Below are positions 6,241 through 11,964 of a stretch of DNA of 64,000 bases, piece after piece. Position 1 is the first letter of the stretch, and every line of letters begins with the position of its first letter. The translations under genes were made by a program, and so were the position numbers. This DNA comes from Blastocystis sp. Blastoise. Taxonomy: Eukaryota; Protista; Bigyra: Opalinata. Below the pieces are notes generated by a model. The model was not told the DNA's origin. It searched no databases and saw only the letters and a list, made by a program, of their open reading frames with translations. The stretch lies in the NCBI GenBank assembly GCA_039096225.1, contig JBBPEB010000033.1:372001-436000 (forward strand), in the 5' to 3' direction.

Positions 6241-7399
6241 ATGTCAGATCCCACAGAATGGATAGAATATATCAAGACAAAAGGTCATCTTCCTATGTCA
6301 CAATTAAAACGATTATGTGAAACTGCAAAAGAAATTTTCTTCGAAGAAGGAAACGTTCAACAAGTCAGCTCTCCAGTCACTATTTGTGGTGATATTCATG
6401 GTCAATTCAATGATCTCTTAGAATTATTCAACAATGGTGGTGATGTCCCTGATACAAAATATATATTTATGGTAAGGTTTTAATATTATTTAACTCGTGT
6501 TTTTTTTTTAAGTTATTTTTTTAATATTATATTATTTATATTTATGGGTGATTATGTCGATAGAGGCTTTCGCTCTGTAGAAACATTTCAATTATTAATG
6601 TGTTTGAAAGTGTGGTATGCTTTTTTTTAATATTTTTTTATTATTATTGTATTATTATTATTTTTTTTATTATTATTATTATTTTTTTTTATTATTATTA
6701 TTTTTATTATTATTTTTTATTATTTTATTATTATTATTTTTTATTATTAATATTGATATTACTATATAGTTATCCTGATCGTATAACCTTATTACGAGGT
6801 AACCACGAAAGCAAGCAAATTACACAGGTATATGGTTTCTATGATGAGTGTTTACGTAAATATCAATCCTCTGAACCTTACCAATGGTGTATTGATGTAT
6901 TTAACTTCTTAGGAATATCCGCTGTATATATATATATATTATATTATAAACAAGATATAGAATTATTAATTATAATTAACAGAATATTATTATTATTATT
7001 ATTATATAGTTAGTAGATGGTAAAATCTTTTGTGTTCACGGTGGTCTATCGCCTGATGTTTCCACATTAGATAAAGTATAAATCAGTCTTATATATATAT
7101 AATATTCAATATAAGAATTACTGTTTTGGCTATTTTTATTAGTTATTAATTATAAATAATCTATATATATTTATATATTTATATATATATTCTTGCTTAT
7201 TTTCTACATAGATTACTCCTTCTCCTACATATATATATATATATATAGATTCGTACACTCCCGCGATTACAAGAGGTTCCTGAGGAGGGTGCTCTCAGCG
7301 ACTTATTATGGTCAGATCCCGAGGAAATCGAGGGCTGGCAACAGAGTCCCCGCGGGGCTGGATACTTATTTGGTTGGAGAGTCGTTTCTGAAGTATATA

Positions 7400-8381: not shown

Positions 8382-9000
8382 TTAATTAAATTCATAATCA
8401 TCATTTTCTTTATCTAATAATACACGAATCAAATCATCAATAGAATCCGTAGTAAATCTTTTTAAGGATGGTATAATACATGTAGCTTCTTCAGTCTCTT
8501 CAGGTACTAAATTCATTAAAGAAGCTACTTCAAATTCATCTAATCTTCCAACAGAACTATAATCATCATTATAAGTCAACTCAAAACTTTCTAAGCTCCT
8601 ATAATAATTATGTTTTTATTTATTATTTAGAACTATTTAAATATTAATATTTCATTAAATTATATTACTCACATATATATACATACTTTCTTAATTCTTC
8701 TATTCTTGGCTTTTCTTGAATAGGATCTCTTAATTTACTATATGCAATTGTGTCATCCAAAGTAGTTAATACAACTTGTTTGATATCATCTTCAGCATTT
8801 TCAGTTTTCTGTCGTCTTTCGGATAAAATAATAGCTACTTCAGAATTAGACAAACAGTTTGAAGCATAATAATCTATGAAAATGATCTTTAAAAAAAGAA
8901 ATAAAATACCTTCACCTCTCAGCTTCTTGGCAATAACAACTGGATCATTCTATAAATATATCTTATTATATAGATCTAGAAAAAATACATTAGAATTCAT
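8382..9000 (-). CDS. RPB4: RNA polymerase II subunit RPB4 (4 exons)
   Basis: MNSN|NDPVVIAKKLRGE|DYYASNCLSNSEVAIIL... and LDEFEVASLMNLVPEETEEATCIIPSLKRF match the RPB4 HRDC-like fold motifs. Confidence 0.88.
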
Positions 9001-9070
9001 TTCGTTTAATTATAGGCAGATAAAGAAAAAAATAACAATGAAAAAGTTAAAAAAACTTTTTATATGTAAA

Positions 9071-10245
9071 ATGAATACAACGCCAAATGAACAAGATATT
9101 TTCGTTGAATATAAAGATGAGATTTCCAATTTAGTGAGTCTTGTTCTTAGTAATATAAAAGAAATGATTCCACCCCTTCATTATGAATGGAAAATTAAGG
9201 AAGTATATAACTAAATGTTATGTAGAAAAAGTATATAGATTCAATTCTTTCCTTATCATGTATCAAAACATACCTATCAAAAGTGTTTGTGGATCTTTTT
9301 TAATGATGCCTTAAATTATTCATGTTATACAAGAGAACAACTTAACATGACTCCCGTATATTGATTTTGAGTATTAATTAAGTTTATGTGTTTAGAAAGT
9401 CCATAAAACATATTCAACTTCTGTTTGTCTTTTTTATAATCAAACTTGTACCTATGTAGGTTTATTTAATTATTTATATGTTAATTTAATTGTTTATATG
9501 TTAATTTAATTATTTATATGTTATTAATAATATATATATATATATATATATATAAGGGATGTAGAGATTGCAAACTCTTTATGAATTTCTCAAAATTCTC
9601 ATTTCCCGCTCAATTTAAAAAAGATTTAAAAACACTTTCAACAATTCAGTTAAGTCATCGAGCTATATATATATATTGTATTATAATTTATAATTGTTTT
9701 TTTTATAGTTTATTTTACTATTTTTATATAATTATAAGTGGATCTTTATATATATATATTGTATTATCATTTATAATTGTTTTTTTTTATAATTTATTAT
9801 TATTATTATTTTTATAATTTTAAGTGAATATATATATATAAAGGCTATATATACAAGTTCCGGGACCGTTCAAGAATCGAAGAATCAAATAGACCCCAAA
9901 ACTGTTGTATTATCTATACCTCAAAGAGATCAATTATATAAACAATTACTTTCCAAAATGACTTTAGTATGATATATTATATTTATTATGTTTTGTTTAT
10001 AATATTTATTATATTTATTATGTTTTGTTTATAATATTTATTATATTTATTCTATTTTTAATATTTATTCTATTTATTATATTTATTTTATTATATGTAT
10101 TTATTATATATATAGTATGATTCAACGAAACTCATTCTTAGAAATCGACAGCTGGATCCCTCCTTTCTTGTTGGCGGGCAATACTTCAAATCGTATATAT
10201 ACATATATACATATTATATATAAAAATATAAATCTTCTTCCGATC

Positions 10246-10281
<36 letters not shown>

Positions 10282-10525
10282 TTCTTCCTATCCTATGTAT
10301 ATATAGTTGGCCTAATAATAACCCTCGGTCTCTCCATCCTCTCCTCCCTTGTACCGCCTCTCAGGGCCTTATTATCCCCTGCATTTCACCCTATGGACAC
10401 ATACTTGGCATGCAAATCAAACCTGAAAAACAAGCCAAACGATATGATACAGTTGGTCGTAAGGTTAATAATAAGAAAAAAGGTCCTTATTATAGTCTCC
10501 CTAATGGAGATACACCCATGTATAT

Positions 10526-10560
<35 letters not shown>

Positions 10561-10739
10561 TATTCATCTAATTAATATATATATATATATATATATATAG
10601 TTATGTATGGATTCCTACGGCTTTAAAATCATTATATTCATCTGCCACTCTTTCAACGCCTCCCCCCGCGGTTATTGGCATATGTGAAGGAGGACTCAAA
10701 CCTGCTATCGCCTCTATTTTCTTAAATACTGTATATATA

Positions 10740-10771
<32 letters not shown>

Positions 10772-10986
10772 TTATAGGTATTTTGTGGATCTTTTACAAG
10801 GCAATTCTCAGCATATACACTTTTAAGTTTTATATATATATATATATATTAAAATACTATATATATATAATAAAATACTATATATATATATTAAAATACT
10901 ATATATATAGTTTTATCCGTGATTTAGAAAATGATTTCTTTCATGTTCCTTTACATTCTTCACAGATATATATGTATATATTCTCT

Positions 10987-11055
<69 letters not shown>

Positions 11056-11283
11056 TCCTGATGCAGGTACATGTGAGAATGAAGGTGTCTTACTCGATTG
11101 TATAACGGTATATAGAAATATACGTCAACAAGGATATAATGTTCAATTCGCTTGGTGGGGACAAGTATATATATATATATATACATATTCACTATGAAGA
11201 GTATAATATAATATATATAAATATGTATACATTATTATAATACAAATAAATACTCTATACTATGTTCTCTCGTGAATTCATAA

Positions 11284-11363
<80 letters not shown>

Positions 11364-11964
11364 GAGAAGAAGCCAAGAACTATATATAAGGATATATCCG
11401 ATAAGGTAGGAATAGAAGTGGCTCCAGTTATTCAAAGTTGTGATATCGATGATCTTGTGACTAAATATAATAACTATTATCCACAAATATTACGTTATGT
11501 ATATTAACATATATATAAATATATATATATATATTAATATTCTATTATAGATTGAGTATGAGGAGTTAGTATCCTATTGTACTCCAGAACTGAAGCAGTC
11601 CCTTATAAGTCATCATCTCTCTCCTTCGACTCCTCTACAACCACCACTAGATCTCAATACCTTTGATCTCTATCAAGACTATTATCAATCTTCTACACAA
11701 GACACATCTATATGGTCAGATTATCCACAAGAAACCATAGACGAACTACATGTAGAAAACGACATAGAACACTCTATCACTTCTTCCTCACAAGATGCAG
11801 ATACTATATCTACATATACTCATACTAGTTCCTATGAAGAACAATCAGCACACTCCATGTCTACTCATACAAATGATACTTATAAAATACCGAAACTTAT
11901 TGAAACCAAAATTACTCCTCCATCAAAACAAATTGGCTATCATATTTTATTAAATCATATATAA
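9071..11964 (+). CDS. TOPRIM/primase-like protein resembling cyanobacterial DUF3854/CyRepA1-type replication proteins; ~11 exons
   Basis: Spliced product contains RDQLYKQLLSKMTL..LRNRQL..YFKSW, GLIIPCISPYGHILGMQIKP, SLPNGDTP, IGICEGGLKPAIA, IFPDAGTCENEGV, GYNVQFAWWGQ and CDIDDL, then a Ser/Thr-rich tail to TAA at 11962-11964. An alternative in-frame ATG lies at 9038. Confidence 0.72.

Follow-up and report, generated by a model that had tools for sequence, protein, structure and literature searches.

The protist Blastocystis sp. Blastoise carries a gene, WA158_005553, whose NCBI product, identified by a protein search, is a hypothetical protein of 457 amino acids (P0121 below). It lies at positions 9071-11964, on the plus strand, of a stretch of 64,000 nucleotides (nt) from a 1.26-Mb contig (the window; JBBPEB010000033.1, positions 372,001 to 436,000). 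The initial annotation of the window had read it as an old, horizontally acquired and intron-bearing primase or nuclease of cyanobacterial plasmid or phage type. We propose that WA158_005553 is a nuclear gene for a primase module derived from a plasmid replication (Rep) protein, and put the probability of this overall explanation at roughly 0.75; that it is a homologue of DnaG-type primases acquired by horizontal gene transfer (HGT) we regard as very probable. The bacterial-type primase usual in eukaryotic organelles is Twinkle, of the T7 gp4 kind, and besides Twinkle we know of no DnaG-superfamily primase from eukaryotic nuclei. Known transfers into Blastocystis come mostly from gut bacteria.

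The locus and its exons

The Blastoise genome comprises 33.3 Mb in 34 contigs with a guanine plus cytosine (GC) content of about 24%, and that of the window is likewise 24%. Blastoise is a tortoise-gut lineage, and its genome agrees with the tortoise-derived Blastocystis isolates, which have genomes of 26-33.3 Mb with 21-23% GC and long introns, annotated using BRAKER3 and RNA sequencing (RNA-seq) (Genome Res 2025, PMC12129017). WA158_005553 is present as a single copy in the genome, and its neighbours are RPB4 upstream and eIF5A downstream, both on the minus strand. As it is annotated on the 1.26-Mb contig, is single copy and stands between RPB4 and eIF5A, it is resident in the nuclear genome rather than a contaminant. 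When P0121 was mapped back one exon at a time, nine exons resulted, all of whose joins are in frame and GT-AG. Exons have 25-43% GC and the clear introns 4-15%, many of the introns being rich in (TA)n. The exons were searched singly, with the database entry P0121 representing the spliced product.

Exon 1 (9071-9202) encodes MNTTPNEQ..EWKIKE, residues 1-44 of P0121, within a frame open from 8876 to 9214, and is followed by a GT donor at 9203; an upstream in-frame ATG at 9038 would prepend MKKLKKLFICK. The next annotated exon (9844-9966, with an alternative start at 9858; residues 45-85) contains IPQRDQLYKQLLSKMTL and the first helix of the primase domain, and is 58% identical to residues 63-81 of an Acaryochloris relative in tblastn. 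It is followed by the exon YDSTKLILRNRQLDPSFLVGGQYFK(S) at 10116-10192 (residues 86-111), the counterpart of cyanobacterial ..DLxRRGLTDEQI.., which is 59% identical to ILRERGLNPRNLYGGNY of the orthologue described below. Exon 6 (10307-10519; residues 112-181), with GLIIPCISPYGHILGMQIKP and SLPNGDTP, covers the N-terminal subdomain of the RNA-polymerase domain and matches Synechococcus PCC 6312 at E 1e-5 (tblastn). TOPRIM strand 1, with its conserved Glu and an invariant Lys, is encoded by the exon at 10601-10730 (residues 183-225), in which AVIGICEGGLKPAIASIFLNT aligns to VEGTGAKP. The short exon VFCGSFTRQFSAYTLL (10778-10826; residues 226-241) is the counterpart of ..IGAAGGQFASSPxTL.. and is 69% identical to IFLGSFTRRISDYTLL of the orthologue. 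TOPRIM strands 3 and 4 are encoded at 11053-11164 as (I)FPDAGTCENEGVLL..GYNVQFAWWGQ; here the NCBI exon begins only past the CAG at 11064-11066, at position 11067, and FPDAG is lost from it. The third acidic motif, DIDD, falls in the exon GEKKPRT..SCDIDDLVTKYNNYYPQILRY (11361-11498; residues 275-320), for which the orthologue has CDIDELIVKLPNY and the cyanobacterial consensus DIDEL. The last exon (11551-11964) adds 137 residues (321-457) rich in Ser, Thr and acidic residues, modelled with a predicted local distance difference test score (pLDDT) of about 30, and ends in a stop codon. This tail, disordered in the model, shows no detectable homology, has no Pfam or NCBIfam match and contains no helicase, and with eIF5A next on the opposite strand the earlier statement that no helicase follows is borne out.

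The motif series quoted in the initial annotation was likewise found throughout on the plus strand and in the order given: RDQLYKQLLSKMTL at 9925-9966; LRNRQL..YFKS|W across 10116-10192 and 10307; GLIIPC..GHILGMQIKP and SLPNGDTP in 10307-10519; IGICEGGLKPAIA in 10601-10730; IFPDAG..N..V and GYNVQFAWWGQ in 11051-11164; and DIDDL in 11361-11498.

Two further candidate exons on the plus strand, both outside the NCBI model, lie between exon 1 and the exon at 9844-9966. Candidate exon 2' (KVHKTYSTSVCLFYNQTCTY; 9396-9455) would encode the first half of a Cys cluster; it is flanked by GT-AG on both sides and is in frame with exon 1, it has no homology support, and its GC content is 0.25 versus 0.08 in the intron that follows. 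Candidate exon 3 (GCRDCKLFMNFSKFSFPAQF..; 9557-9648; GC 0.28) would encode the second half, is preceded by AG at 9555-9556 and followed by the donor GTTAAGT at 9649, and is in frame to 9858; at the matching place of its coding sequence the orthologue has ..LCNCKIKTRLNLAPATVF... The two stretches join exon 1 and 9858 via in-frame GT-AG introns and, together with KLFMNF..FPAQF, resemble CNCKIKTRLNLAPATVF of the orthologue. The C-x6-C-x3-C-x2-C cluster proposed earlier as a zinc site is encoded in these candidate exons, and the orthologue has CxxC..CxC in the matching position, but its alignment with the cyanobacterial CxxC-x6-C-x9-C finger is not significant. The first intron of both gene models (9203-9395) itself has an exon-like GC content of 0.25, is not (TA)n-like and holds open stretches with Cys, for example KCYVEKVYRFNSFLIM; a further exon of the zinc-finger region could be hidden there.

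Homology to cyanobacterial CyRepA-type proteins

Using hhalign, P0121 was aligned with 20 N-termini of cyanobacterial CyRepA-type proteins (alignment A2) at a probability of 98.9% and E 2.7e-17 over 204 columns, which establishes the eukaryotic, intron-bearing, single-copy gene as a homologue of the N-terminal primase-like module of these proteins, some of which carry the label DUF3854. The consensus of the 20 N-termini (ERDRxYRxLLxQLxL..RRGL, GYLCPIRDxxGxIVGxQxR, HLPNGELPL, VEGTGAKP, YPDAGAVxN, GYxVxVAWWGQ and DIDEL) also agrees with the cyanobacterial motifs listed in the initial annotation. CyRepA1 and CyRepA2 each combine a DUF3854 domain at the N-terminus, related to Toprim, with a C-terminal DEXDc helicase (PMC10079941).

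Sequence searches led to the same family from several sides. In tblastn, exon 6 had three weak matches among the 72,556 plasmids of PLSDB, two of them large cyanobacterial plasmid proteins and one a Streptococcus DUF3854 protein, and those two cyanobacterial proteins gave collinear tblastn matches to the window in three different exons. When P0121 was used against the same plasmids, 32 of the 32 matched records were cyanobacterial (best E 2e-9, tblastn) and all encode one protein family; the match in the Acaryochloris marina genome reached E 2.3e-10. With the Acaryochloris N-terminus as query, 531 relatives were retrieved, about 1,000-1,200 amino acids long; all organism names given for them were cyanobacterial, and some are labelled 'DUF3854 domain-containing' or 'plasmid replication protein, CyRepA1 family'. 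All 69 family loci in species-representative bacterial genomes were cyanobacterial, in a scan built on cyanobacterial patterns, and the family occurs in 29 of the 401 sampled Cyanobacteriota genomes. In the opposite direction, a hidden Markov model (HMM) of the cyanobacterial family run over six frames of the whole 33-Mb Blastoise genome had its sole match at 11045-11167, the FPDAG..AWWGQ exon (E 5e-5), and the Acaryochloris sequence matched 11053-11164 at E 4e-5 (tblastn). P0121 is 23-28% identical to any relative outside the orthologue. The phage label of the initial annotation was not supported, as no P0121 match was found in 50,697 phage records and phage clusters appeared only among the structure-level neighbours in the ESM Atlas.

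An orthologue in a second eukaryote

A phmmer search with exon 6 against 1.84 billion representatives returned the protein itself, an orthologue (P0122; 51% identical, E 4e-7) and a spurious GAF-kinase (P0123). P0122 is encoded on two Logan contigs, L006 (logan:ERR14042343_23294, 5422 nt) and L007 (run ERR14042390), which are 99.35% identical to each other and come from an AT-rich eukaryote with 25.5% GC. Its gene has few introns, all canonical. Exon 1 joins in frame to the exon SCSDC..LCNC..LRARDIWYKILFDDLRL; the second exon runs from REILRERGLNP.. to GICEGGLKPAIAASIMNQ; and the third, uninterrupted, reads IFLGSFTRRISDYTLL-RYLMDIERKILNVDIGSSTIVV-YPDSGTTHNPDV..GYDVRIGWWGQ..CDIDEL.. and continues into an acidic tail. 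Within this third, TOPRIM exon, which matches the cyanobacterial profile at E 4.6e-12, VVYPDSGTTHNPDV..GYDVRIGWWGQ is the counterpart of window positions 11053-11164. The N-terminus is acidic (MSELDQKDRE), with no in-frame ATG upstream within the open stretch.

Two intron positions, after ..MTL/..LRL and after ..FLNT/..IMNQ, are common to both eukaryotes, and five introns are specific to the window gene. The shared introns show that the gene was already present before these two eukaryotic lineages separated. The open reading frames upstream of the orthologue on L006 (263-874, 926-1297 and 1716-2666) have no counterpart in the Blastocystis genome, and no synteny was found. Further eukaryotic relatives were found neither in a protein search with P0121 and with a mixed alignment (251-800 amino acids, based on shared words), which returned P0121 only, nor in two JGI metagenome scans, one with P0121 and one with the exon of the orthologue; this is weak evidence of absence. 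In place of a widespread, vertically inherited eukaryotic family, the possibility that would have spoken against a transfer, the searches run gave a single eukaryotic orthologue.

Fold and catalytic residues

An AlphaFold2 model of residues 1-360 of a cyanobacterial family member (P0001), built with A2, reached a pLDDT of 88.5. Using Foldseek, it matched the DnaG RNA-polymerase domains of Bacillus, Staphylococcus, Pseudomonas, E. coli, Mycobacterium and Aquifex at E values of about 1e-6. VIA-align superimposed DnaG on model residues from about 98 to 360 with Z 15-17.4 and a root-mean-square deviation of 3.2-3.8 Å over 227-235 residues; T7 gp4 and T4 gp61 scored about 12, and RecR, RNase M5 and type II topoisomerase TOPRIMs scored 7-8, in the TOPRIM part alone. 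Given Z scores of 15-17.4 over the whole RNA-polymerase domain versus 7-8 for TOPRIM-only proteins, the cyanobacterial module is, as modelled, a complete DnaG-type primase core rather than TOPRIM alone. This range of P0001 is matched by residues 62-278 of P0121, and the ESM Atlas model of P0121 (residues 61-318) has template modelling (TM) scores of 0.64-0.67 to clusters labelled DUF3854, Zn_ribbon_DnaG or DNA primase. The initial annotation had left the choice between primase and nuclease open, and the full DnaG-type domain of the relatives favours the primase.

We take three acidic motifs of this family to be the equivalents of DnaG motifs IV, V and VI. In the model, E245 of P0001, at the end of TOPRIM strand 1, corresponds to the Glu of CEGG, which lies in ICEGGLKP (10601-10730), aligned to VEGTGAKP, and is present in the annotated protein. 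D294, at the end of strand 3, corresponds to the Asp of PDAG; FPDAG is encoded at 11054-11068, with a single Asp as in all cyanobacterial relatives, where the orthologue has PDSG. The invariant Asn of the family, six residues past this Asp, is also kept (PDAGTCEN here, PDSGTTHN in the orthologue). The DIDE that follows strand 4 of the P0001 model corresponds to DIDD here, and this third cluster reads CDIDDL in Blastocystis, CDIDEL in the orthologue and DIDEL in the cyanobacterial consensus. The claim that the catalytic acidic residues are intact thus stands for the Glu and DIDD in the annotated product, whereas the Asp of PDAG is encoded in the genome and absent from the annotated protein.

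Junctions without GT-AG ends

Between ..AYTLL (ending at 10826) and TCENEG (11069), the plus strand encodes S-FIRDLENDFFHVPLHSSQIY-IFPDAG, interrupted by two sequences that have no GT-AG pair. The first (10827-10909; GC 0.05) can be read as GT..TA or TT..AG and has an 8-nt direct repeat, AGTTTTAT, on both flanks; the second (10974-11052) reads GT..AT and is mainly (TA)n, and no AG occurs between 10974 and 11053. Neither is found in the orthologue, whose exon is continuous there. The segment that they enclose, (S)FIRDLENDFFHVPLHSSQIY (10910-10973; GC 0.26), corresponds to the helix and strand before PDAG and is left out of the NCBI model, in which the GT at 10827 is joined to a strong acceptor, TTTTTCCTGATGCAG|G, at 11066, in frame and with the segment deleted. 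Within 11052-11067, the codons for FPDAG (TTT CCT GAT GCA GGT) are at the same time the textbook pyrimidine tract and CAG|G acceptor chosen by that model.

Exact excision of both inserts restores the frame and the register of 27 residues: S-FIRDLENDFFHVPLHSSQIY-IFPDAG aligns without gaps to RYLMDIERKILNVDIGSSTIVVYPDSG of the orthologue over 27 of 27 positions, with 9 identities. The middle 20 residues score 30 against YLMDIERKILNVDIGSSTIV in a fixed-register comparison using BLOSUM62, a value that none of 100,000 shuffles reached and that was the best among the 1,304 20-mers without a stop that three frames of the locus contain. On this comparison of sequences we read the segment at 10910-10973 as coding, and it seems reasonably probable that the PDAG segment is kept in the mature mRNA, the two sequences that are not GT-AG being removed. 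The splicing proposed in the initial annotation does yield IFPDAG, then, but only with such junctions; P0121, using the AG at 11065-11066, does without it.

A junction of similar kind was observed in the PP6 gene of the window (plus strand, 6465-6545), where the universal phosphatase motif GDYVDRG after ..YIFM is restored only by removing GTAAGG..TTTATG, a GT..TG sequence whose two junctions carry an 11-nt direct repeat, TATATTTATGG. No in-frame canonical alternative was found for this interval, since the one AG acceptor inside it leads to a stop codon or shifts the frame whichever the phase.

AT-AC introns are numerous in Blastocystis (PMC10639083). Splicing of the U12 type was considered for the odd junctions and rejected, as the 5' ends GTTTTATA and GTATATAT and the (TA)n-rich 3' regions are unlike U12 signals. 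An assembly error is also unlikely, as it would require three different single-base errors exactly at the junctions.

Discussion

We hypothesise that WA158_005553 goes back to a replication protein of a bacterial plasmid, of the CyRepA type known from cyanobacteria, and specifically to the primase module at its N-terminus. Of this ancestor the DnaG-like part alone would have been kept, as a possible zinc finger followed by an RNA-polymerase domain with the TOPRIM fold, and the helicase half would have been lost. An acidic, Ser/Thr-rich tail would have been added in a lineage-specific manner, and spliceosomal introns would have been gained later, two before the split from the second AT-rich eukaryote and at least five within this lineage. 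The groove of its RNA-polymerase domain may bind single-stranded DNA, a divalent metal being held by CEGG (through its Glu), PDAG (through its Asp) and the DIDD cluster, and the protein may make short RNA primers or at least bind a primer-template. Because it has no helicase of its own, it would need to be recruited by another protein. The function to which we commit is that of a primase-like factor in DNA replication or repair, putatively recruited via the tail; that it is an active primase we propose only tentatively, at odds that fall somewhat short of even.

A derivation from a plasmid Rep protein that lost its helicase partner raises the question of what recruits the protein and which DNA it primes. 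The donor is also unusual for Blastocystis, and the published screen of these genomes missed the gene: that HGT screen of tortoise Blastocystis genomes gave six tortoise-specific transfers, and WA158_005553 is not among them (PMC12129017). The transfer of WA158_005553 from a bacterium to a protist is unreported so far, and what is new is a eukaryotic, helicase-less and intron-bearing form of a known DnaG-superfamily primase module. That the transfer is old, as had been suggested, is consistent with the 23-28% identity, with the branch of 4.1 substitutions per site on which the eukaryote stands in the tree and with the two shared intron positions, although these settle neither date nor donor.

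Several results weigh against this reading and have to be set beside it. With regard to origin, the long eukaryotic branch is joined to another long branch and its nesting within the cyanobacteria is unsupported, so that the tree, through long-branch attraction, is uninformative on the donor; the inference of a cyanobacterial plasmid origin follows from the fact that the detectable homologues are exclusively cyanobacterial and not from a supported clade, and a closer, unsampled donor is possible. R196, W205 and L226 of P0001, invariant in the cyanobacterial family, are altered in both eukaryotic sequences. Pfam DUF3854 (PF12965) had no match in single exons, P0121, pieces of the orthologue or the genome in six frames, and the Pfam Toprim families had none in P0121 or any exon. 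Similarly, no exon, including the last, matched the NCBIfam model CyRepA1 (NF042913), which spans the helicase half (residues 363-975 of P0118) and does not cover the N-terminal part homologous to P0121. Under the definitions of these two models, the protein belongs to neither family. We attribute the empty DUF3854 scans and single-exon Pfam and NCBIfam scans to the shortness of the exons and the divergence of the family; DUF3854 matches just one of the 20 cyanobacterial N-termini, at E 0.13. With regard to the enzyme, the family has only one Asp at the position of the DnaG DxD, the predicted model of the annotated P0121 is poor (pLDDT 55, and below 50 exactly at the skipped segment), and the 20 best PDB matches to this model, DnaG or gp61 primases throughout, are weak (E 0.01-0.6). 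Finally, the NCBI annotation is guided by RNA-seq and uses canonical sites only, and its model lacks the Cys-cluster exons, IFPDAG and the 20 residues before it, while the junctions proposed here are deduced from the genome sequence, the NCBI protein and the orthologue.

The last of these points leads to a serious alternative, namely that the annotated, catalytically crippled isoform is the sole product and that the intron 10827-11066 removes the PDAG strand, leaving a dead DnaG-like fold that is kept for binding DNA or protein or for some other non-enzymatic role. We hold this to be unlikely, but by no means negligible. P0121 uses GT-AG junctions throughout and stays in frame, TTTTTCCTGATGCAG|G (11052-11067) makes a good acceptor with a pyrimidine tract, the exons past the skipped segment are open and conserved (AWWGQ, DIDD), and the annotation pipeline gave preference to introns supported by RNA-seq (PMC12129017). 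Yet the skipped 60 nt encode the gapless match to the orthologue that no shuffle equalled and have an exon-like GC content amid introns of 4-5% GC, and removing exactly the two inserts brings back both frame and register. Pipelines based on STAR and StringTie are, moreover, biased against non-canonical junctions; the NCBI model also omits the Cys-cluster exons that the orthologue keeps in its coding sequence; and PP6, in the same window, requires a GT..TG junction for GDYVDRG. That the gene is instead decaying, two recent AT-rich insertions with duplicated junctions having broken the TOPRIM core and the annotated product being a relic near loss, would fit the absence of both sequences from the orthologue, the repeated junction sequence and the strong divergence of the protein (branch 4.1); but the homologous exons contain no stop or frameshift, both splicing schemes remain in frame through the 137-codon last exon, and the similar junction in PP6 is in an apparently essential gene, and we consider decay quite improbable.

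Two further explanations concern the nature of the module. The module might be suspected of being a nuclease with a TOPRIM domain, like OLD, RNase M5 or RecR, as such domains occur in nucleases too and the DxD site has a single Asp; however, the homology extends over the full length of the DnaG RNA-polymerase domain and takes in its N-terminal subdomain, where GxLxPxxxxxGxIxGxQ lies, and the Z scores of 15-17 for DnaG versus 7-8 for the RecR, RNase M5 and topoisomerase TOPRIMs make this very improbable. Likewise, the absence of any Pfam or NCBIfam match for the exons or P0121, and a PDB sequence-profile search with the cyanobacterial alignment that returned noise only, could be taken to mean that the likeness to TOPRIM and CyRepA is due to chance or composition in a lineage-specific eukaryotic gene without bacterial ancestry. 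This is refuted by the hhalign result (E 2.7e-17, 204 columns), the collinear tblastn matches in three exons, the 32 plasmid matches to one family and the sole genome-wide HMM match, and we give it practically no weight. If, on the other hand, the plasmid-derived primase module is taken in its most far-reaching form, as a stand-alone working primase used in the organism's own replication, for example in the mitochondrion-related organelle, whose core is split by undescribed and precisely removed sequences that lack GT-AG ends and are flanked by direct repeats, a pattern found also in PP6, the combination would be unlikely as a whole. Even so, a model guided by RNA-seq here removes a metal-binding strand that comparison says is coding, and if the odd sequences are truly excised, they represent an oddity of splicing or excision in this genome that merits separate study.

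Among known systems the nearest are CyRepA1 and CyRepA2 (Slr7037 of pSYSA, ORF B of pCC5.2 and the Acaryochloris and Leptolyngbya plasmid proteins of about 1,000-1,200 amino acids), in which roughly the N-terminal residues 100-350 are homologous to WA158_005553. Both share RDxxYxxLL, GxLxPxxxxxGxIxGxQ, LPNG[ED]xP, EGxxxKP, PDAGxxxN, AWWGQ and DIDEL; unlike them, WA158_005553 has no C-terminal helicase, is nuclear and intron-bearing, has a new acidic Ser/Thr-rich tail and is only 23-28% identical. Bacterial DnaG, which consists of a zinc-binding and an RNA-polymerase domain, has its RNA-polymerase fold in common with the cyanobacterial relatives (Z 15-17.4), and with the Blastocystis protein it would share, in a motif comparison that we presume to hold, the Glu that follows TOPRIM strand 1 and a D-x-D-E cluster similar to motif VI. 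WA158_005553 lacks the DnaB-binding C-terminal domain of DnaG, a single Asp replaces DxD in motif V, and the searches gave no match to DnaG families at the level of sequence. Twinkle and T7 gp4 also have the DnaG-superfamily primase fold, and Twinkle too is nucleus-encoded in a eukaryote, but WA158_005553 is of separate origin (Z of about 12 for T7 gp4 versus 15-17 for DnaG) and is not fused to a helicase. The Pfam DUF3854 proteins of Bacillota plasmids and phages are close to P0121 in structure, as judged from the ESM Atlas (TM 0.64-0.67), and the Streptococcus protein mentioned above aligns weakly to exon 6 (E 9 against PLSDB, 2e-4 locally); they lack the AWWGQ and DIDEL motifs. Set beside these by its description, ORF531 of the plastome of the fern Mankyua chejuense is also borne by a eukaryote and has its best matches among cyanobacterial DUF3854 proteins (PMC6220310); unlike WA158_005553 it lies in an organelle genome, as an intronless mobile insertion.

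A role in an organelle, which the upstream ATG at 9038 had suggested in the initial annotation, appears slightly weakened, because the orthologue starts with an acidic sequence and has no upstream ATG and because the genome has a Twinkle-like gene of its own. The latter (L083; G000:C31:198835-199591) has matches to Toprim_2 (E 0.08) and AAA_25 (E 0.003), 500 nt apart on the same strand, and its exons read ..AVYEATGIPTVSLPNGAQSLP..IYLWMDFDRTG, with a DxD motif within WMDFDRTG, followed by GPTGSGKTT. The only DnaB_C match in the genome (L077; G000:C29:1140925-1141113) was rejected as a replicative helicase, being an exon of a RuvBL1/2-type ATPase (..LLAGEPGTGKTAIAMGISQSLG..). Among the bacteria, a 2.4-Mb Cyanobacteriota genome contains a short copy of the module (G283:C1:1561301-1561990), in an open frame of 520 amino acids on a contig of more than 1.5 Mb that is presumably chromosomal, and this copy could be a natural helicase-less bacterial form.

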